A DNA stretch of 64,000 bases, taken from positions 310,001-374,000 of the forward strand of contig NW_026931035.1 of assembly GCF_032062105.1 (NCBI RefSeq), given 5' to 3'. The DNA is from Saccostrea cucullata. Its lineage: Eukaryota. The position numbers were made by a program, and so were the translations under genes. Numbering within the stretch: position 1 is the stretch's first letter; each line of letters begins with the position of its first letter. Below the pieces are notes generated by a model. The model was not told the origin of the DNA and did not search any database. It worked only from the letters and a program-made list of their open reading frames with translations. This document shows positions 13,901 through 30,205 of this stretch, one piece after another.

Positions 13901-16900
13901 ACAATTTGAAGTGCATTAACAAGTTCCCCTGTATCTTAACATGCAGTATGAAATTACCGTAATTGTTTGGGGGCTTTTTTCATTGTGCTGGACACGTGTT
14001 TGGTTTGCTCAGCCTTGAGTGATGTTTTTTGTTCTTTTTACTGCCTGAAATGCAAACAAGTGGAAATCGATTCTAAAACATCGACATATGTTCTTGTTTG
14101 GCCTCGATAAAAAATACCACTGACTATTAAAATTCCTGCCATGGACACGTTTACTTTTCCAAGCTAGCATTCTGACTAAGGCCTTCAGGGTTACTAAAGT
14201 TATCTTCTAAACAAAAATAGTATTCAGCTTTAAACTGCACTGGGAAATTCTAGGTCAAGATAATATGTTTTTTGTAAAATAAAAATGCAAATTAAAACAA
14301 ATGATTGCAAAATTTCTCAGTACCCAGGGATAAATTGACTTCCATGAACTGAGTAGAGCTATAAGCTGGCTGATGGGAATGGAAGCACATTTGGTTAATA
14401 TTAAAATTTCTACAGAAGCAATGGTTATCCAATACTACTGGTCACTAACCTCCAGAATGCCAGAACAGGTCATAGTGACCCTTGGCCAAACAGAAAATGA
14501 AGTAATGATATATTTTTCTTATCTGGTAAAATGATAACGAGAAAATGGCAAATAACAAAACTGAGGCCGGGCCTGGGGGGTTTTCCAATCCAGATGACCA
14601 ATGAAAAAAATGTGTGGGAAGCCATCACTGGGAGTCAAATATTTTGATGTTTTTAATAGTATGGTGTAGGTTTATAGAGGTCTTTTATTTTAATTGAACC
14701 TAACAAAATAAATGTTTACTCAATTTAAAACAAAGCTGGAATTCAGACAGGGAGAAATCAAGATCAGCATTTAAAAATTCTTTATATGATGCAAGACACA
14801 TTTAATTTTTTTTAAATCTTTATTTTCAAAATTTATACATTAAAATTTGGTTTATTTTAATTTCTAATGAATGCAAGATATATTCATTTCAAATCTAAGA
14901 GAGAGAGAGAGAGAAAATTCCTAGAGAATAAAGGTTTTTTGGTCTTATTGAGAAATTATACAGAGTTGCGAGTAAGTATGTGGGATGGGTTTTCATTTGC
15001 CCTTTGACCTGGTCAGTCATAAGTTTTTATTTCCCAGTGGGTCGGGGAATTTCCTTACTTTATTTTGTTGAAAGTGAAAAGTGTTCCCAAGTCACAGTCT
15101 GTTATGCGAGTTCATAAGTTGATTGTCAAATGTGTAGTCTCTTGATGGAAAAATATATTTCATTAGGAAGTGGAAAAATGTTCAATGCATCCAAAATCAC
15201 CAACGAAGTAGAGGAGGAGACAAGATCACAATAAATCAAAAAGGCAGAGTACTGGTTACATTAGTTCAAAAGCACAACGGGGACCTGCTAATTCTGTTTT
15301 AAGTGTGGAGCAGAGAGCTGGGTGTATCGTTACATGATCGTTTTATCGCTTAATCAAAGATATTATCATATCTGATAGAAAAATTATCCCAAAGTGGATG
15401 TTTATTGCATAAGAAATTATGCTTTTGTATGCAGAATATATACTTGATATCATTTGAAACAGAAATGCAGTAGGGTGAAGAATAAGAATTTTCTTTTCCA
15501 AAATAGGTTGAGTGAACTCTTCATTTTATTTATTCAACTTATGTTGAGAATTGCATGTATTTTTTGTTCCATCAAGATCTGGCTATCATAAATAGGAAAA
15601 GCTTGAATTGATTCATGATGGATGACAGCATCCCTTTTGAAAGAGTGACTATAAAGCCCAGCCCTTCTAATGACCAAAGAGCTCTCTTATAAATGGTCAG
15701 TCTTTCGTTATTGGGATAAAAATGTATCTTTCAGAAAATCTGTCAAAACAGTTATTGATTGACCGTCATACAAACAAATGTGGAGGATAATTTTTTCTGA
15801 CCTTGCGGTTCAGATGCAGGGCAAGACAATGGTCACTTAGCAATGGTCACTTAGAAGGACCGGTTCCTGGAAGTCGTGTTTTGTAGCAAAAACTGCAGAA
15901 ACCTCTGAGACACAGACGGTGTGGGTGTAAGATGCTCTGCATCAGAACACGTCCTCAGAATTTAACTGGAAAACAAGAGCTTTAATTCAGATGTGATAAT
16001 GAAATGATTTGCTGTGATTAATAAAATTATGTATCCTTCAAATATATCTATGTACATAAAGTACATAACCCAGTCACATTAAAATTGGGTTATTATAAAA
16101 AAAAGATCTTAGAAGAAAAGAGTAAGTAGCAAACATATTAGCAAACACATTTCATGCAAATATAAGTGAATTCTGGGCTAAGTACAAAAAAAAAAAAAAA
16201 AAAACAATTCATTTTTTCTTATAATGATAAGAAATTGTTCAGGTCTTAATTGTGTAACATGTCCCAGCCCATTGAGTATAATGTAAACAGCTGATAAATT
16301 GGTCCTGGGTTCAAATTCCACTTGTAAAAATTAAAACCTGTCATTTAGATTGGATATACACAAGTCTTGTGCCAGAGTAAGCAATGGGACCTTAATGTAA
16401 GCGGTGACAGGTGATTAAACAAGTAATTTGTTTTTTGCTTACATTCATCTTACGGGGTTTGAGACTGAAGGGTACCTTGCATGATGCAAAAATTACTAAA
16501 GACCCAAGAAAGCAAGTGATTAAAAAAAAAACCAAAGCTGTTTATTGCAAAATAAAAGCAGTGGGAGGGCCAGCTAATCCAATAGATTTTTGTGAGTGTT
16601 TTATTGATGTGGGGAGGAAATATGTTTTGAGAGATGACAAATCTGAAGAGATAGGAAGTAGAGAGTTCAAACTCAGGCAACTTGGTCATTATAGTAGAAA
16701 AATATGTCCTTCAAAGGCAGAAAAAAATACTTCTTTTCATGCTTGTTTAATTTGTCTTTGGGTTGGGACTTTTTACGAGCTTTCACTAAAAAGATGAATA
16801 AATACTTTTTTTTATTTTATCAGCTTCATTAAATGGCCAAAGGCAAAAGCGGTACAGTAATTTGACGTGAAATGGATTTCTGGTCCTGGTCAATATATTG

Positions 16901-18740
16901 GATAAAATAGTATGTGATATGCATTTTTGTGGCCGTGGGTCAGTTTGACCGGGATATTGATTTCCGTGTTCCATGGTCATTTAATACAAAAATGGACATC
17001 CCAGATAAAAAGATGGGGCCCGATACCAAAACCAAACTGATAAATTATGGAGATTAAAAGCCCTTTTATTAGTCCTCCTGAATATTTATATGTAAGATAA
17101 GTTTTTGTTAGTGGGACCTCTGATTAAACATGGACATAAATCTAAAGTCCAGTTGTAATTAGGATATGTTTTTGCCATTGGTTAATTAAGAAACTCTGGA
17201 GTTTGGCAATGAATCACGATATAAATAGGTTTAAGTTCCTTTAGTGGGTACGTAGATTTCAAATGAGGAGGGGTCTAGGTTTGTTTTTATCTACAGGGTT
17301 ATCAATAAAAATGATTTGCACTTCATGGGATGTTTTGACCGCTCCCCCATCGAAAAACTAAGCAAACAATACGAGTTGTTGTTTAGTGTCCAAACGATCA
17401 ATAGGTTTTAGCCGATAAAAAACGTAAATGGTCATAACATTACCGATGGTCACATGGGATACATGTAAGTTTCAATTTAGATACTTGCAGGTAAAATTAA
17501 ATTTATATCTTAGTTCTTAAGTTTAAAATGGTTTTTCAAAAAAGTTTTTTTTGTTGTTTAATGATATGGTTCTAATTTGTATTCAACAAGCAATTGATCA
17601 ATATTCGTGGTCACTCCAACTTTTTCTGTTGTTATCTATGTTTGGTCAAGAGGGATTTAAAATAAGAAAATCTGGTCGCATAACTTTCAATAAATTATGA
17701 TGATTTAGTGTAAAACTGAAAGGCTTTGACAGAAATGAGATGCAAACTGTTTTTCCTTGGTACTTTTGTCCACACGCTGACCCTCCATTTACTCTCAGCC
17801 AATATATGCACGGTCAGAGCATGCATAGGCATCTCCGTTAAAATAAAACATGTCTGTTTGTTTGTGGACATTACATGAGAGAGTGTCAGCATGAAATCAC
17901 TGGACATTTCTGTAAGTGTTTTTCTGGTACATGTATATAGGGTAAAGAAATAGCTTTTTAACTTCAAGACATTCTAAGTTTTGGGAACCCTTAATATTAA
18001 AGATCAGTTAATTTTGGGGATGCTGACAAAGTTTTACATTTTTTCCTCTTTTTTTCTTTGAATATTTGAATTTTATTATTATTTAAAAATTTTTTTTTGT
18101 CTTTTTTGTTTTTTGTTTTCATGATAAATGACATTTTGCTCGAGTTCTTTGAGGGGTATGACTAAGTTGACAGGGGTCACGGAGTAAGCTGATAAAAACT
18201 TTAGCTTTTAGATAACAGACAAAATGATTTAGATACAAGTATAAATTGTTTGTTTCCTATTGTTTGAGATATGATAACTGATTTACCAGTATATCATGTC
18301 ATCATCAGCTAAATTTTGTATTACATGTAATTGTTTTGCTTTTACGCATAATAACCCCTATTTTTATCAAATTTTTTTTGGTTGTAAAAATGTAAAATAT
18401 AAGGGAAGGCTTTTTTCTCATGGTTATTAATTTGATCTTTATTTTCAGTGACACTAGGTTCAAAAGTAAGAAATAGTACCAAGACAGTTTTTATTGGTGG
18501 ATTCAAATATGAAGATCAAAGTGACTGTCGCTTTTGAATCTAATTCCCTTAAAAACATTAAATTTATCATTTCCTTAAGAAGGGAATTTTTAGGAAATAT
18601 TTAGTTTCAATGGTATCAATTATTAATGGGTGTTGTAGGTCATTTTTCAGCTGTTGCACATTTATAAGTAATTAATATAAATCCTAAATGTTTCATATAT
18701 ATCTCTGTCTGTTTTCATATTTGTACAAATCAGACCATTA

Positions 18741-18833
18741 CCTTTGTTTTTCCATCTGTTTTAGGTAAGTCAGAAATCTAAAGATGGTTGTAGAAAAGTT
18801 ACAGGTACCTCCATATACAATTGATATGTAAGT
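18741..18833 (+). other. Candidate recursive splice site (ratchet point) with 63-nt cryptic exon
   Basis: CCTTTGTTTTTCCATCTGTTTTAG|GTAAGT (junction 18764/18765) and a second GTAAGT at 18828. Confidence 0.6.
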
Positions 18834-21800
18834 AATGCTTATATTTACCTGAAGCACATCATTTTTATTATCGCATTTCAGAAATACATTCTAAATCTCT
18901 TTCAACTATTTTCATTTATTTTGGTCTAAATTAAAATATGACCATTACAACTTAATGCTCAAACATATGTAATTCATCACTTTAAAGAATTAATTTGTAT
19001 TGGTAGCCCCAATAAAGTTTAAATTTGATTAGATTACTATCCAAAGTTCTCGAGAGACTGCAAAAGAAACAAAAATACCCATCTAAATACATGATCTCTT
19101 AGATTAAAATTTCTAATTAACAAAATGTTACACCATTTTATTCCCTGTAAATCTAACATTTTGGAAAATTAATTTCTAGCATTATATAACTAAAGCCATG
19201 ATTAGGCCGCAAAAATCCTGGAGAGATTATAGGTTCTGATTAATGATTTCAGGGGGTTTTCAAAGGATTTGTTTAATTAGTCAATTTTTCGGAGGGTTAT
19301 CAGTAAAGTTGCATAAGGAGGGTGGCTGTAATATTTTAGTGCCTGTCTTATCTCCGCTGGAGTAAGCTGTTTTAACTTGTCCACTCCTCAGAGTGGACAT
19401 ACTGAGTCAGAGGGTCAAACAAATAGCCATGTTGTAATCTCCACCAAAAGTTAATTTGACCCTTTCAGTTTAAGACCTCTCGCTGACTAAACAAATGTTT
19501 TATGGGGGGAGGAATTTTAAATAAACTGGCTTTTCTTGTCTAAAAGAGGAAATAAAATAGCCATGAAGAAACTTAAATGTAGTTCTGTTGGATAATTTAC
19601 CCCAAAATTACAACTTTACATTATTTACTTCTTTCCTATCTACCTACAATTTAGGGTCAATCTAAGAAACTTTTAACTAAGATAATTTTCACTTGATCTC
19701 CAAATTGTTAGAGGAACAAAAGAAGATTGTGAAACAAATGTTGAAGTGAATCACTTGCACATATTTTTTATTCTTCATTTTAACATACCTAGACTTTTAA
19801 AAGTGAATTGGTGAATTGTAAACTGACCATTATAGATGCTTAACCATGTTAACAATACTTTGAAAGTTAACAAAGAAGATATCTTTATGTAAAAAAAAAA
19901 AAAAAAAGAAGAAATAAAGTAGTAAAAAATTAACTTGAGGTGTATTGAATTTGACCACTTCCTGTAAATGGTTGAATGCTGTGTGTGTGGGATGTTTCAC
20001 ACTGGCCGTTTATCTGTTATACCCTTTTTATTTCTCAGATGTTCAGGTAATAGCCTTAGCATGGATCTCTCTGTGTAAATACAACTCTGGCCACTGCCCT
20101 ACAACTGGTCAGTATTGGTTATCAAGGTCATTGACCAGCCCACTAGTCACACCTGGTTCCAAAAATTAGGGCAGGTACTTCAGAAAAACATACATAGGTT
20201 ACTGTATTTATAAGAGTTTTTTTTTTAAGTTTATGCCATCATTTTTGTACAGTAGATTTATGGAAATAATCTTTTAATTAAAAAAAAACTAAAAAGGAAC
20301 ATCATTCTTAATTTGTAATTATAAAAAAAATTTAGAAGTAAATCCAATTTCCATCCAGAGTTTTATAGAAATTAGGGGATTTTTTTTTAATCAAAATTAC
20401 CTTGAAGATACCCCACCCCCAAAAAAATGTGAAAGTAAAAAAAAAATTAAAGTTGATATAAAGTGATTAATGATTGAATTTAGAGGGAGTGGTGGGCCTT
20501 TATAATGATAGAGTGAACTGAGTACAAGTAAATAGTGAATGTGTCCGTGCTGGACCAAGAAGTATTTGGTCAAAAGCTATAAACCAGACCATGTCTAAAC
20601 AACAAGCATTGTGTCATAAAACAATTTACACAAGATAGAAGGACCCATTTAAGTCAACAGTTGTTAAATAACATTTATTTGATATTCTGAAACAATAAAG
20701 CAGATAAGATTTAATCTTCGGCTTTTGCACCCCCTTTCATAAACTATTTAGTATATGTACTTGGAAACAAGATACTCAACTTGCTCTTAAATAGTTATAA
20801 AGTTTGCAATAAATAAAAAGAAAAGAGTAAAATTAGTTTATCTAAGTATTACTTTAAAAAAAAAAGATTAATTTTTTGACACACAAAAAAAAATTTCAAA
20901 CTGACAATTCACATTAAAGTTACTGTCAGAAAAATTCAGCATAAAATTCAAGTTCGGCATACTCAAATATTTTTGAAGCTGAAAAAAGTAAAAGTATTGG
21001 AAAAAATATTATATTTAGGAAGTTTATTTGTTTATTTTCTCCTTGTTTATTTGGACAAAATAAACTAAAAATTCTCTTTGAAATACTGACTTTACCATTA
21101 ATTTCTCACAAAAGATAAGCACTCTATTCTGGTCTTTGAGGAAACCTAGAGCTGTGGGTCAGTCCGAATAACTGAAGCAACATGATGGTTTTTTCTCAAA
21201 GATCAGAGCTATTCCCTCTGGTCAGTTTTGAGATAAGATAAAACTGAGTTATAAAGTACAGAGTGGGTCACCCATTAGATTGTTTACTGAATGTGTTTTT
21301 CTCAATGAGAACTCGTGGATGTTTTTAGCTGCCTGTCCGCACACACCAGATTTAGACGTAGAAATATCCTAGTTTTCTTTATAAACATGAATGACCCCAG
21401 TGATTTTCACTTCAATTCATACAGGTTTGAATTCTTAATTAATTTTGACTTTTTTTTTACAGCGAAAATATTTGAGTTTCAAACAAAACATTTTTTTTCC
21501 ATGAACTATTTAAATATCATGCTATCATTTTTTTTCTCAAGAAATAAAATCATGACTAATATTTGGTTAACATTCAGCATCTTTCAATGAAGACAACATA
21601 ATTCAAAAAAAATAATTTATTAGGAAGAAAATGGGAAAATGATTAGTTAGCCACCTATCTGAATTCTTACTGAATCAGTCACATTTTATATTTTTTTCAG
21701 TAAAACCTATATTCTGTGTTTTGATGCATTCTAAAAACTTTTAAATTTTTGACTCTTAAATAAGAGAGATGATTGATTAAGAGTGGAGATTCATCAGAAA

Positions 21801-22483
21801 ACAGGATCAACTGATTTTTAACCACAGGATCCTTTATTGAACAAATACTGTTTCCTGTTTTTAATTATCTTCTGTGGTATAAGTGACCTTGATTTGGTCT
21901 CCACACTTTAAATGTTCCCTTATATGACAAAACCTAGAGATTTTTATTATTTTCCTGCACAAATCTGTGTAAGATTTCACCTATTAACCTACCCCTGATT
22001 TAGACAGGAAGAGGATCTTACAGAACTTGAAGGTCGATCCTTATATAATTTCTATCCCCAACCAAAAATTATTCATCTTTCCAAATACTCAAAGTCCAGT
22101 AAAGGAAAAGAACTGCATAAAAGTTTTTTACACCCTATATTTAGACAGAAAAGCCCCTCCTATCCCCAACCCATCCCCCTCCCCAAAAAGATTTCATCAA
22201 TGTACCTACCTGGGGATTAGACAGGAAAGTGCCTCCTACACCCTCACCCTTCACACCCCCCAAAATAATTATCTTCTCAAACCAGAAGTATGCTTGCAAA
22301 AAAAAAGGCTCCAAAAAACTCTGCACAAAACTGCATCAATATACATGTATCTTCACAAGGTTAAGGCCGGAAAACCCCTTTCTATCCCCCCTCCCCCCAC
22401 GAAAAAGTTAATAAAAAGTTAATCTCCCCAAACAAAGGCCGCCTGCAGCTTCTGATTACATATCATATAAATACTGTAGCTGT

Positions 22484-22614
22484 CAGGCACCTGCTGTTAA
22501 TTATTTTTCTTGTAATAAAAAAATATACTCCCTACCTAATAATAAACTGTTTATTAATAGGTAGGCGGGGTATATCTTTTTATTACAAGAAAAATAAGTT
22601 ATGTCAGGTGCCTG
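22484..22614. repeat. ~130-bp near-perfect inverted repeat (foldback/MITE-like)
   Basis: CAGGCACCTG..TTATTTTTCTTGTAATAAAAA..CTACCTA is mirrored by TAGGTAG..TTTTTATTACAAGAAAAATAA..CAGGTGCCTG. Confidence 0.85.
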
Positions 22615-25007
22615 TGCATATAAATTATTGTGCTTTTCTCTGTGCTGTTGACCATTTGTTTAGAGAGTATAACTGCTTTACCGGTTTACCCATTTCAAAA
22701 TACAATGTAATATGACAGTTAAGTTTGTAAAAACTTAATAATTTATGTAACATCACCACCCCTCCCCCCTCCACACACCCACACAGTTTCTGATTTATGT
22801 AAGCTTAGTTGTTATGCATATATAGATAAGCTTTCAAGAGTTGTCACACTTTAGTTTTAAGATGAAAAAAAAAGTTACATAAAGATATTTGAAAGAATGC
22901 AAAGTAGCAAAATGCAGAGACAGTGAATTGTTAAATTTGTCATGAGTTTTATGGATTAGGTCTCACTACGTCATTTCTCTTTTCCTGTTAAATGACCATT
23001 TCCTCCGTTTGAGAAAATAATGTAGTCATTGTGACACATACACAATAAACAACCCTTAAAAAATTCGCTAACTGACCCATATACCACTAGCTAAAACTAG
23101 CCACACATCTGTCCAAAAAGGAAGAAAAAAAATGTAAGTTTTATCTTCCTCTCTGAAAATATAGAGAAAGTTCTGAATTTAAATCTAAGCAATTTTTATT
23201 AAGTAGAAATTTGTTTTTTTTTTTTTATTCAATACTAAGGATCATATTTATGGTTCTCTATCTTATTATTTTATGCACTTTTTTTAAAAAGAAATTTTAC
23301 AGTTAGTAATTGTAGTATTATGGTATCAATTCATAAGGTTGCATTCATTGACACATGAAATGGTAGTTAAAAAAAGGGAAACAACTGTGGATAAAAAGAG
23401 CACCTGTTCTCATTACTGAGACATGGCAGGGTATCATGTAAATTGCTGATGAAGCTATATCATTAAAATTTGGACTCAGAAATAGGAGTACTTCCTGTAT
23501 AGGAGTAACAAAATTATTGCTTCTCTTATCATATTTTTTTTCATGGAAAATTCTATTTCAGTTTCTTTCAATATAAATCAAAATGCAAAATATTTGAGAG
23601 AAAATAAAATCTAAAAGAAAAACTTTCATAGGAAAGAAAAAAATTCATTACATGTGTCCCCCCCCCCAAATTGTGATATTTTACACACTGCATTGTGTTT
23701 TAAATACATATTTTCATAATGTGCTAACATGGCTGTATTACTTGCACACTTCTAGTGCAATGCAAAAAAATGCTCATTCTATATTGATCAGACAACTTAA
23801 TTGTGAGGAAAAATTTTAAAATACAGTCAAAATGCTTATAAATACTGTATGCATCAACACGTTATTATCATTTATGCCTTCACGACTGATTTTAAAGCCT
23901 ATGGGAAGTAACTCTAGGAGATACCAGAGACTGGTACGGTACTATTTTTTCTCTCACAATTGCTGCGTTCTTTATCCAAGTCCAAAGTACCAAAGAGCAT
24001 GAAGATTATCTGTCCAATTTTTCAGGGAAGGGAATAAAACCATTGCTGTTTTGTCCCAATGTAAGGGTTTTGTTATAAGGAAGGTATAAATATTACAAAA
24101 TGATTAATTTGAGTTCTCCATATATCTTTGGTTTCCTGTTTCTCAACAGTTTAACACTGAAACATCAAAGATTGTTTTTTTTTCACACAGATTCAATCGA
24201 ACACTTGATACAAGTAACAGGAAAGGGAACTATCAGAGTCAATAGCATTATGTCTGTCTCACACTCAAATTATGGGTGGGCCCTGAAAATTAATTAATAT
24301 CATTTTTATTTTTTTTCCATTAAAAAAACTAAATATGAAGGCCTGAACTACCAGGACTTGACTATGAGAATATTACATGGTACTTGTATCACTATTCCTG
24401 TTACAATCGTGAGAAAGACAAAAAATTAACAACAAATGTTAGAACTTTGCTCTTTAACCTGAACAAGTGTTATTTTAGGATTTTTTCCATTAAAATGAAA
24501 AAAAAAAATTGACTCATATCAGAATTATGTATCAAACTTCAACTGATAAGGTTTCTACTTTAACTTTTTTGGTAAGTTTAAAAAAAAAAAGATTTTTACT
24601 TCTTTTTTAACTATTTTTATTTGTTTCAATTTTATGCAAATAATTATTTTCACCATGTTCAATTGGTCCATTATAATTAAAAAAAAAGATTCTTTTAGGA
24701 TTCTTGCACTTGATTTTTGTGCCATATTGCAGATTTTGAAAACTAATTCTTTTTAGGGAGTAATTGATAAAAAAAAAATAGATTCTGAAGCTAAAACAGA
24801 ATTAGAAGATCTCTGTAGATCTATGAGTAACTTATGAGTAAATTAAATGTCTTGATAAAGGAGTTATAATCCTTTTTCATTTCTTTTTGCACTTTTTGTT
24901 TCCCAGGCTTGACCATAGCAAAGTGAAATGAGACTGAAAAAAAAGATAAGAGTTAATGTCTCCTTAAAAAAATAATTTCTGTGAAAGAGAGAGAGACAAA
25001 AAGATTA

Positions 25008-25214
25008 CTGTGAAATCACAAATTTTCGAGGGGTTTAATTTTCGTTGTTTTCAAGATATGAAGAGACCCACGAATTCATGTCCACCACGAAATGTAAAAT
25101 ATTAAGTACATGACTACTCAACATTTCTTCACCCACGAATTCAAATCCCCATGAAGCAAGAGCTTTTACTCAAGCCACGAAACTTTGACTCCACTAAAAT
25201 ATGTGATTTTACAG
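25008..25214. mobile_element. TA-flanked MITE (Tc1/mariner/pogo-type)
   Basis: TIRs CTGTGAAATCACA / TGTGATTTTACAG with TA on both sides. A second, highly similar copy lies at 60618-60828. Confidence 0.85.
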
Positions 25215-28200
25215 TATTACGTGTTCAGGTCAGGTATATCAATATAAAAAGAGGGAAATTAATTTTTTTTAAAAATCTCAATGATGCCACAAGTACATTA
25301 TTTTTATACATATTTTTTTCATATTTAATTTCTCTAGTCATGTTAATGATACATGTACAAAAAATTGCCTTTAACAAAGCAGTCTGTTTACAAGTAACCA
25401 CAGTTTAGGATGTATTTAACAGACAATCCCTCGAGTGCAACAAATCCTTTCATGAGAAAATAATATAAAACAGTAACAGTGTTTCTTTAATATAAGTAGG
25501 ATGTTCCTCTGAAGTGTTTTGGCTCTGGACAGGAAGGGGATGAATTTTTCCATGTCTCATCCTTATTTTATTATGTACCAATGAAAAAAAATTGAATATG
25601 CGACGAAGAGAAAAATAGTGTGTGTGTTAGTTATTGCTTTCCGGTGAAGGAACCCTGCAACGGAAATTTTTGGAGAATGAAAAACTCAGCCATGAGCTGT
25701 CCACTTATGTAAAATAATAAAGAGTAAATTTAGAGTGGTGTACCAGGGCTTGTGGTTTTTTCCAGCAAAGTTCAATTGTACTTTTTTCTTTCAAGATTTC
25801 ACTCAAAATTACTTCTAGCCATCAAATTAAGCATGGGGCTTTTGTATAGAAAACAACCAGGGTTGGTAGGGGGTTGAGGAATTTGGAGTTATCTCCCTCA
25901 TAGCATTTTTTTTGTTTATACCAAATTCAAAAGCTGGTGTTCATTTTAAATACTCTAAGTTTATATTGTCAGTCGTAAATCATATGGCCTTAAATCACTT
26001 AATCCATACATGTTGAGTGTGCTTGTATACTGTCTTTTTCATGCATTGTATCCAAAAGGTCAAAAGAAAAAAAAATTCTTTTGCTATGAGTTAATGGCAT
26101 ACATTGAAAGTATGGGCTTTCATTCAAATTCTGTTTAATATGAACATCAATGTAATTTATTTTAGATCTCAAATTCAATTATAAAAGAAATTGCCTGTTA
26201 GTTTACATTACATTTCAACTCTTGCAAAACCCTAAAAAGTAGCCAGTGACAAAAGACTTTATTCAATTTACAAAATCCAAATGTTTTTATAACAAAAGTG
26301 TGTTATATTGGATTTTTTGTGAAGTTGCTTTTCATTTGTTGTACATTGATTAAAAAACCTGATTGAATATAAATACATCATTAATTTTTGAATGTCCCTG
26401 CTGAAATCTTTTCCACAAATATTGAAAAAAAGATTTGTCAATTGAAAAAACAGTTTCAATAACATATTGACATGGAGAAAAATAGAAAGGGATTTTTTTT
26501 TATGAGGGGTTGGGTGAACTTAAATAAAATGTTTTGTAAGAGAGAGGTAAAGATGTCATAAAAAAAGGTGAGGCCGAATCGGAAGATAAGTTTCACGTTG
26601 TGACAAGCACTTTGGACACCTGACTTTTTGCTCTGACCTGTGCTACGAGGCTCTTTAAAACAATCCACCTGTGGTATACAATCGTAATGATAAAAATCGA
26701 GAGTGATGAAAAAAAAACCCTCACTTTTTTTTTTGTAAAACAATGTGACCTTCTTAAGGAGGTTTCTAGTGTGGGATTTGACGTACGCGTGCAACCTTTG
26801 AAATGAATTGTTTAATTCCTGTTTGGAAAGGCTTTAAAAAATAATACTTGTTGAAAAATTGCAAGTTGTAAACAGAAATAAGGTAAGCTAGGGAGGCTTT
26901 TTTTCCAACCTCCATTTTTGTTTTTGTAATGACATTTCAAAATTCTTCTTCCAACTTTTCTTTCTTCTTTTTGTAATCCTTATCGAAAGAGAAAATGACA
27001 GCTGATTAGCACTATAGGTGTTTTGATAGTGTTTTTATTTTTCTAGTTTCCTCTCCAGGAAAATATACTAACTTTATCTGAGATTATCACATTGGTGGAA
27101 AAATAATTAATACATTTCGCTAAATTCCCACCCCCACTCTCTGTTATTTGTCTGCATTCAAGATGTACCTAGACAAATAGAAAACTATCTAATTAGTAAT
27201 TTCCGGTCGACTTCTTATGAAGGATTCTGAATTTTAACTTGATCGATCATTACTACTGTTATTATTTTAGGGGTAACATTTACACTTGATTCAACATTTA
27301 CAATTATTGACAATTAATTTTATCAACTGCTCGCATAGGCAAAGGATAAATGGTAAAATTTCAGTCCACTTTTAAAAAAAAAAAAGTAAAGAAAGAGGTG
27401 ATGTAGAAAACTAGAACCTCAACACCTCAGTTACTTGTTAACCCACCTTTAAGAAGGTGATTTATTTTAAATGAAAACAAAATTTAAGAAATACCATTGT
27501 GCAACCAGGGTTGACCCTAATCACTATGGTACAACTGACTAGCATGGGTCCAATAAATTTCCATATAATACAAAATATCTTTTTTAACTTCTGTTCAATA
27601 GAAGAATCCTTTGGTAACCCACGCAAAAAATTCAGATAGCCTAGCATTCAATTCTTCTTCTGTATCCCCCCAATTACCTGGATCCACTCCCCTATTTATC
27701 CTTTTCTACGTGCATCAGCATACATGTTTTCCCCAGATTTGTTTAAAATTTGTCATCAAGGTGTTGTTGTTTTTTAACAAAGAAACCTGAATAATAAAAT
27801 GGCCTTCTGAATCTTCCAAACATCATTAGTAGAGAGGAAAATCATATTAGCAAATAGCATTTAAAATTATTTCTTATGCAAAATGTTTGTCTTTTAGGAT
27901 TACATCATGAATAGAAATTGAACAAACTTCTTTACAGTTTGGGTATAAAATATAAAATGAATAATTATAATTCTACTAATAGTAATGAAAAACAAGGGGA
28001 TACAAATTGATATATGAAAACTTCATTTTCAAATGAGTGGTTTACAAGAAACATCATAGACTGCTTTACTACAACAAATAAAATCAATAAATAAGGGTTC
28101 ATTTAAGTAATGTATCTCCGAATGGGAAGAGATATACCAGTGTTTTATATGACTGTTTGTCTGTGTGTCTGTCAGGTGTCACAGTATCCTGACCAGGTCA

Positions 28201-29678
28201 TAACTAATGGGTCACTGATTGGAAGAAATTCAAATTGCCCATGACCTCTTAGACTTAAGGTTATGTCTAAAAGGTCAAGGTCACTAGGCAATAAGATTAT
28301 GAAATGGTGCTAGGGTCATACAGATACGTTACAGGAATAGGGGAGGGAAATTTTTTAATATTTCTAGATATATACATTTACACGTAAATGTCAAGTTATT
28401 TAAATTCCAATGAAATATATATTAAAATTAGGAAGGAAAAATTGTTGATTTAGACTGGATCATTCCACCAACCCAGCAGTTACTCTGACTAGAGCTAAAG
28501 CCTGATGTTCCCTTTATAACCTCTCCCTCTCCACATTTTTAACAGTACATGTGTATGATTTTTTTCTCTCCAATTTAAAGATGAACTATAAGATATACTA
28601 TCACTGTGTATACAATGAATACTTGAAAGATAATAACACCTCGATAAAAACAATGGTGAAACTCCCGACCTCCTGTGAAAAACGCCATATTTTGATGAAG
28701 GAGTGTCCTTTCTGCACGAAAAAAACATGATAATGCCTGATAAAAATGGTCATAAGGGCAAAAATGCCCACCACAGGTTCAAAGTTAACAATATATGACA
28801 ATATTGGTGTATTATCTATATCTTTGTTTAGTGTGAGAGAGAGACAATGCAAGCTGTCTGCAAGATGAAGGGCTAAGTTAATGTAATTAATTAACTGATA
28901 ATCAATTATGGATGTGTTCAGGTAGGGGGCATAACTCTTCCTATGTTCTAATTTTCCAACTGATACATTTTTTAAAGTTACTTGAATTATGCATAGTATT
29001 TATAAACAGAACTTTTGAATAGTTTTAAAAATAATTGAGTTAATTAAAGATCTGAGATTAACCAGCAGCTTAAATGGTGCTATTTAAAATCAACTCTTTT
29101 TACATCTCTTTAAATTGTGTGTTCAGTTTCAAAAGTTGCAAGTACAGTAGAACACAGTTATAATGAACAAGCTTATACTGAATTCACACTTACAGTGAAA
29201 TGCTTTTCATTCGATGTAGGTTTTAAAAACTTGTCAGATATTTTAATTATACTTAAAAACAAATCTCTTAACTACTTAAATCATGTTTTTCTGAAATATA
29301 AACATAATGCGAGAGAAATTTCCCAATGTAGCTAATGCAGTTATTTTTTTAAGTAGCTGAACTACATTACCATACAACAAATATTAATTCAATATCAGCA
29401 AGATAAGTATATTTGATGTTATAATATTCTACAATAATTTTCACTTTAGAATTAAATGTCAAATCTTTTCAAACACATAAGGTTCATTCATAATTTTTAT
29501 ATATTACAACTTGTTTACACCTAATTTATTAGCACTAATAAAAATGCACAGACTCACTGAATGAAAAAATTATCCAATAGAAATTACGATGAACTCTTTA
29601 CAGAAAGGTTTGTGTAGGATGTTCTTAATTAATAGAGAAAAAGCAGATATAAAAAAGCCTTTCTTCATTTCCTTACAG

Positions 29679-30205
29679 GAAAGACATTGTGTCTCCACAG
29701 GCCGCGGATACTGGCGAAAAAATACCCAGTCCAGGCACCATCACCTCAGGCAATTTTCATCCTAAATCACATGACTCTCCCTTAAACTCGGAACCTCACA
29801 CGCCCGAAAAATCGGACAGATCCACGCCACCCCCAGGGCCGGAGAACCATCCCAACAGGAACCCCAGTCCCTCAGATCTCAAACAGCCATTTTATTCTGG
29901 CTACCACACTCCCAACCTTCAGGATTTTAAGTCGTCTTTCGGAGGGAGCTATCCAAGCCCTGGTGTGGGATTTCCCAAAACTCCGACGAGTCAGGACGGG
30001 GACACCCCCCGGGGTCATCTCTCCCTACAGAGGAGCTTCAGCCTATCCGACAGTTTCCATGACGATAACTCCAACTCCTCCGAGTCATCATTCCTAAATC
30101 CCAACACTGGTCAGCCTAATTACACCCGCGACCCCAACACTGGACAGATCACCTACCAGCCTAATAAGGAGGGAATCTTCTTCTGCCATCTCTGTAGCTT
30201 CTCTG
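29679..30205 (+). CDS. hb: hunchback coding exon 3 (Pro/Ser-rich region and first half of N-terminal finger 1, ...GIFFCHLCSFS)
   Basis: TTCTTCATTTCCTTACAG acceptor; corresponds to ORF 29689..30240; G|GTTGGT donor in phase 1. Confidence 0.9.

Follow-up and report, generated by a model that had tools for sequence, protein, structure and literature searches.

A candidate recursive-type exon in the long intron of oyster hunchback

Recursive splicing has been demonstrated in flies and vertebrates (10.1101/006163, PMC8605326, PMC6224609). In Drosophila, ratchet points juxtapose an acceptor and a donor behind a strong pyrimidine tract, with T at -5/-6 in 99.5% of them. They lie in introns of 11.3-133 kb, divide these into segments of 2.6-64 kb, and are far better conserved than their flanks (10.1101/006163). 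The ultraconserved acceptor-donor (SA|SD) motifs go together with a cryptic exon of ~50 nt whose content is poorly conserved and which is usually out of frame. The own donor of such a recursive-splicing exon (RS-exon) is weaker than the ratchet donor (PMC8605326). In vertebrates, the exon junction complex and a dependence on the upstream exon control RS-exons (PMC6224609). Here we describe a site of this form in a 64,000-nt stretch of the genome of the oyster Saccostrea cucullata (assembly GCF_032062105.1, contig NW_026931035.1, positions 310,001 to 374,000 of the forward strand), called the window below. The site lies inside a long intron of the hunchback (hb) gene and opens a 63-nt exon. We hold the case for this exon, 18765-18827 of the window, being a conserved recursive-type exon of oyster hunchback to be about evenly balanced.

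The elements of the site and its two proposed splicing partners are the following, by position in the window.

18741 to 18764, + strand: pyrimidine tract and 3' splice-site AG (AG at 18763-18764), ending TTTTAG, by direct read
18765 to 18770, + strand: GTAAGT, the first six bases of the exon and candidate regenerated donor (ratchet point), from sequence and conservation
18765 to 18827, + strand: 63-nt exon, with TAA at 18766-18768 in the exon-2 frame and ATG 18784 in frame with exon 3
18828 to 18833, + strand: second GTAAGT, donor of the 63-nt exon, exonic side TAT, implied by the RefSeq X2 proteins
10750 to 10921, + strand: exon 2, ending ...AAAAAG|GT in phase 2, proposed upstream partner of the recursive step
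29679 to 30205, + strand: common exon 3, which all 5' exons enter in phase 2

At the site, 17 of 20 bases are pyrimidines, followed by TTTTAG|GTAAGT, and the tract carries T at -5 and -6, as fly ratchet points do. A first-pass annotation, made from the letters of the stretch, had pointed to this tract and the GTAAGT at 18765, with a second GTAAGT 63 nt on at 18828, and direct reading of the sequence bears this out. Its figures of 7.8 kb and 10.9 kb within an 18.8-kb intron also hold. The host intron (10921 to 29679) measures 18,757 nt, and the site stands 7,844 nt from exon 2 and 10,914 nt from exon 3. The intron and its segments of 7.8 and 10.9 kb fall inside the Drosophila ranges, with the intron close to the short end. 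The short downstream exon, 63 nt in length, has its own recognised donor, with donor use at the level of gene models in two species. The site thereby has every ratchet-point feature that can be checked from sequence, and the annotation's description of it as an AG|GT ratchet point with a short downstream exon matches the published form in all of them. The gene was also named correctly as hb: downstream open reading frames encode C2H2 zinc fingers, and the best relatives are hunchback-like proteins of Saccostrea echinata (97% identical), other bivalves, brachiopods, annelids and arthropods.

The oyster site shares the tract, T at -5/-6 and AG|GTAAGT with both the ratchet points and the cryptic RS-exons of Drosophila (Duff et al. 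2015, 10.1101/006163; Joseph et al. 2018, 2021, PMC8605326). As in Drosophila, it is found in a long intron of a developmental regulator, and its short exon has a donor of its own, which by consensus comparison only may be the weaker one (regenerated AAG|GTAAGT versus the exon's own TAT|GTAAGT). The motifs are conserved and the exon content is not, and the exon, if retained, carries a stop. Unlike Drosophila RS-exons, the oyster exon is annotated, holds an in-frame start codon, has a mollusc as its host, and is known here from sequence and gene models. Vertebrate RS-exons (Sibley et al. 2015; Blazquez et al. 2018, PMC6224609) are defined as exons first, and the regenerated donor and the exon's own donor then compete. 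Their retention often triggers decay, and many of them are annotated, as the oyster exon is (PMC6224609).

The window alone is no more than suggestive, and the weight of the case rests on conservation. The comparison with S. echinata says little, as identity is ~82% over the whole intron, with many blocks that surpass the 18765 site in conservation; we rejected this comparison as evidence in its own right. Within the tract, the two Saccostrea species differ at three positions, all of them pyrimidine-to-pyrimidine. Between Saccostrea and Crassostrea, the motifs are far better conserved than the flanks and the exon content, as is seen for ratchet points. Aligning the window with Crassostrea virginica gave these values.

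Tract and ratchet core: 24/28 identical, with a 14-nt perfect run
Exon interior: 25/55 identical
Donor: 12/12 identical, within a 13-nt perfect run at 18825-18837
Downstream flank: 10/24 identical

S. echinata, C. virginica and a candidate site in Pinctada all have the GTAAGT at 18765 unchanged, along with T at -5/-6. In C. virginica, as in the window, the AG|GTAAGT junction precedes the ATG by exactly 19 nt, and the sense strand of the 34-kb locus has no other AGGTAAGT. The exon length is constant at 63 nt in the three oysters (window, S. echinata and C. virginica). Conserved motifs around a diverged interior mean that both motifs are under selection, with the length of the exon fixed and its content drifting. 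The available Ostrea edulis locus does not cover the site: its first base corresponds to window position 20045, ~1.3 kb too far downstream.

Contrary to the first-pass annotation, the exon is not cryptic. Isoform X2 of S. cucullata (P0121, XP_062569069.1) begins with the exact translation from ATG 18784. Isoform X2 of C. virginica (P0184, XP_078333076.1) also starts inside the exon, with a related N-terminal peptide of equal length whose first five residues are identical. In both proteins, the junction codon AT|G corresponds to donor 18828 joined to exon 3. Gene models in two genera thus use this donor, and the 63-nt exon is annotated; the evidence consists of RefSeq gene models, not reads. 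The ATG, 19 nt after the AG|GTAAGT junction, has A at -3 and G at +4, and its frame is open to 18827 and enters exon 3 in the correct phase. When the exon follows exon 2, the frame reads AG|G TAA, a premature stop before the later junctions, as we read by eye from both sequences. Phase 2 at the exon 2/exon 3 junction is confirmed by the proteins P0122 and P0001, so the phase-2 entry reading AGG TAA that had been predicted is borne out. The prediction also saw in this stop a built-in off switch. The stop is present, but it needs no special design, because any exon starting with GTAA stops after a phase-2 junction.

The proposed recursive route would run as follows. In transcripts from the distal promoter, the exon would first be recognised via its strong 3' splice site (the tract and TTTTAG) together with its own donor at 18828. 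Joining exon 2 (...AAAAAG) to 18765 would take out the first 7.8 kb of the intron and recreate the consensus donor AAG|GTAAGT. The recreated donor would outcompete TAT|GTAAGT and be joined to exon 3 at 29679. This second splice would remove the exon with the remaining 10.9 kb, leaving the exon 1-2-3 mRNA. If the downstream donor were used instead, the exon would be retained, and the frame of exons 1-2 would stop at TAA 18766-18768. With the exon retained, only ATG 18784 could open the hunchback frame, which would yield the RefSeq isoform X2 protein. We infer both the use of AG 18764 as an acceptor and the re-splicing at the regenerated donor. A GTAAGT at the start of the exon opposes exon retention, so its conservation would be hard to explain unless skipping after the first splice were selected. 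The strict conservation of this GTAAGT and of the strong acceptor would be best explained by splicing to the upstream exon, then removal by re-splicing. We put forward tentatively, and with some doubt, a broader proposal: a lophotrochozoan case of recursive splicing at a hunchback site that predates the Saccostrea/Crassostrea split, and perhaps the pearl oyster split. Here the recursive exon would double as an alternative translation start, and the choice of donor would decide between full-length Hunchback and a form that is N-terminally different or prone to decay.

The exons of the window are identical to three S. cucullata RefSeq isoforms. Besides exons 2 and 3, the following parts of the gene bear on how the 63-nt exon is read.

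6082 to 6118, + strand: coding part of distal exon 1, start of isoform X1 (ATG 6082, donor GT 6119), matching the P0122 N-terminus
26543 to 26883, + strand: homologue of the non-coding first exon of Crassostrea mRNA contigs, donor GTAAGC at 26884
28908 to 28921, + strand: coding part of the proximal alternative 5' exon, isoform X3 (ATG 28908, donor GT 28922)
18626 to 18684, + strand: 59-bp conserved block, unchanged in S. echinata and for the most part preserved in C. virginica

Isoform X1 (P0122) consists of exons 1, 2 and 3. Among Crassostrea hunchback mRNA contigs (runs SRR21843889, SRR21843893, SRR21843881, SRR21843883, SRR24489183, SRR23703141, SRR23703140, SRR18748336 and SRR18748343), five carry exons 1-2-3, lack the 63-nt exon and show the junction ...AAAAAG|GAAAG. 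Four others begin with the non-coding homologue of 26543-26883, spliced to exon 3. RefSeq bivalve hunchback genes (P0126-P0161 among the proteins) have 3-8 isoforms per species, which differ only in a short N-terminal peptide and share one phase-2 acceptor. These peptides are mutually unrelated, and several of the isoforms begin at an internal Met, as the 5' exon lacks an ATG. The 59-bp block contains AGGTCA (a nuclear-receptor half-site), CAGCTG (an E-box) and TATAAAT at 18677-18683. Its segment 18637-18655 is a 19-nt perfect run against C. virginica. The block may act as an enhancer or as core promoter for an alternative first exon.

The intron is not the plain long intron of the first-pass annotation, since at least two more alternative 5' exons lie within it. 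A serious rival is therefore an alternative first exon driven by its own promoter; we judge this possible but rather unlikely. Transcription would start at ~18690-18780, ATG 18784 would open X2, and donor 18828 would be joined to exon 3. AG 18764 would never be an acceptor, and GTAAGT 18765 would serve either as a second donor close to the cap or as a site in the leader bound by U1. Several alternative 5' exons of hunchback in oysters and other bivalves share the one phase-2 acceptor, and the locus has several promoters; for the exon homologous to 26543-26883, Crassostrea mRNA contigs directly show a first exon. A number of findings favour such an exon or otherwise weigh against recursive splicing. 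X2 is seen as protein only, and its 5' edge could be an acceptor or a transcription start. The conserved TATAAAT block lies 88-91 nt upstream of the exon in the three oysters, so the exon could be a first exon. The sequence context of ATG 18784 is good, and codons 2-5 after it keep their amino acids despite four synonymous changes, which hints that this ATG is translated; a normally skipped exon would not need that. In Mercenaria and Pecten, the placeable alternative 5' exons have no AG|GT ahead of them. No comparable site was found in the hunchback genes of Mercenaria, Pecten and Mytilus, and a general bivalve feature was rejected on this ground. Pinctada imbricata (L007:16550-16700) has one site of the same form in the middle of its orthologous 22.9-kb intron, where it is unannotated. 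This site has 17/20 pyrimidines and TTTCAG|GTAAGT; a donor follows 81 nt downstream, and there is an ATG in frame. Its homology to the oyster site cannot be shown, and a Pinctada-type site arose in 0.75-3.5% of simulation trials, with four non-oyster species examined. Conservation of the motif in other bivalves, which the first-pass annotation had proposed to look for, is thus found in S. echinata, in C. virginica and as the Pinctada candidate, but not in Mercenaria, Pecten or Mytilus. None of the indexed RNA runs contained the stretch. RNA support for the 10921^18765 junction, saw-tooth coverage or lariats is absent from three poly(A) runs of the species label, which gave 0 reads on 17800-19800 and, being without an expression control, are no test. 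We found no mRNA contigs with the X2 exon; the matches were genomic exon 3 contigs and full-length contigs of other 5' forms. Against these points, an alternative first exon would leave the conserved tract and AG (24/28) unexplained. A cap-proximal donor at 18765 would delete the ATG and give an mRNA without an early start codon. Such a donor would be expected to be counterselected, yet it is invariant. In addition, several ATGs precede the start codon in the presumed C. virginica leader, and one of these is an out-of-frame ATG within the exon.

An ordinary cassette exon, whether in the 5' leader or as a poison exon, would be included or skipped in a single step, and its GTAAGT at 18765 would never be re-used as a donor. 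The acceptor and donor are good and conserved, the size is typical, and other alternative 5' exons here are likewise preceded by acceptor-like tracts. Inclusion after exon 2 would produce a premature stop, leaving an annotation pipeline to choose the next long frame, that of the X2 protein. Yet by our estimate, composition would make an exon start with GTAAGT by chance in only ~3 in 10,000 cases, and two genera share this GTAAGT unchanged but differ at nearly all of the next 13 bases. An upstream exon ending in AG makes it a consensus donor, and such donors have been shown in use (PMC8605326). We regard a simple cassette as distinctly improbable. Still less credible is a chance pairing of two functionless motifs in an AT-rich intron, which we consider very improbable indeed. 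Such a pairing would agree with the uninformative S. echinata comparison and with the frequency of AGGTAAGT in the window, which is no higher than expected (3 observed versus 2.15 expected). When preceded by YYYY, AGGTAAGT is observed once versus 0.19 expected. In Markov simulations of this intron, with a site defined as at least 14/20 pyrimidines and AG|GTRAGT on the sense strand, at least one site appeared in 2.75% of trials, and in 0.25% when a donor was required 30-110 nt downstream. Taken per intron, chance would yield one such site in ~3% of cases, and in 0.25-0.75% with a donor downstream. The window, S. echinata, C. virginica and Pinctada each have a single ratchet-type site on the sense strand, and their antisense strands have none. 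What chance does not account for are the perfect 14- and 13-nt runs exactly at the motifs against ~45% identity between and after them in C. virginica, the unchanged exon length and ATG position in that species, and the use of donor 18828 in RefSeq models of two species.

The recursive-type exon, if real, would have a close counterpart in the Drosophila Ultrabithorax (Ubx) microexons mI/mII (Hatton et al. 1998, cited in PMC8605326). As summarised in the citing paper, these measure 51 nt versus 63 nt in the oyster. Like the oyster exon, they start with a donor, lie in a long intron of a body-patterning gene, and are kept or removed after the first splice to give isoforms. By the same summary, the Ubx microexons are in frame and add residues, whereas the oyster exon stops the frame when it follows exon 2 and would contribute to protein only via its internal ATG.

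A full-text search of the available papers returned none treating recursive splicing in molluscs and none combining hunchback, oyster and promoter. The Drosophila hunchback gene has alternative P1 and P2 promoters with two non-coding 5' first exons and no known recursive site. Like the fly gene, oyster hunchback joins several 5' exons onto one common coding exon, and its output would be set by the choice of 5' end. Unlike the fly gene, it has at least four or five 5' exons, some of which give short alternative N-termini. If confirmed, the site would represent a known mechanism in a new phylum, with an exon that also bears an alternative start codon. A conserved oyster site would put recursive splicing in the third great branch of bilaterians. 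Its host is a well-studied patterning gene, whose output in the fly is likewise governed by the choice of 5' end. For genome annotation, the short alternative N-termini of bivalve hunchback models may partly correspond to retained leader or recursive exons, not to true protein isoforms.

The 18765 stretch is single-copy in the 1.17-Gb assembly and showed no repeat structure, which led us to reject a transposon or repeat origin. Comparison with Rfam gave no match, and a known RNA family was rejected as well. A metagenome scan with the conserved tract and core gave 0 matches. Just past the 63-nt exon, 18850-18872 matches 10725-10747, in the tract before the exon 2 acceptor, at 21/23 positions; the resemblance is probably due to chance, since it is not kept at 18850 in S. 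echinata. Run X1 contained one low-depth 249-nt contig that covers 18489-18728 at 93% identity with two small insertions and ends short of the site. The contig is a divergent allele or comes from a close relative; the type of this run is unrecorded.

Elsewhere in the intron, the block 26100-26883 reaches 93-98% identity with S. echinata, and its conservation extends to C. virginica and O. edulis. After it comes the homologue of the Crassostrea non-coding first exon, with the donor at 26884, and the block probably acts as another promoter of hunchback. Within 28822-28921, an acceptor-like tract ending TTTAG lies 77 nt upstream of the X3 exon and is present in C. virginica too. In that species, a tract of this kind also stands 14 nt ahead of the ATG of the X3 exon (L008:19510). 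Some of the "alternative first exons" of hunchback may therefore be internal exons in reality. About 33 conserved non-coding blocks are common to window positions 4000-30300 and the C. virginica locus (L008), and three of them, 7661-7832, 11394-11589 and 14466-14556, can be aligned even with the Pinctada locus (L007). These blocks are likely old regulatory elements of hunchback.
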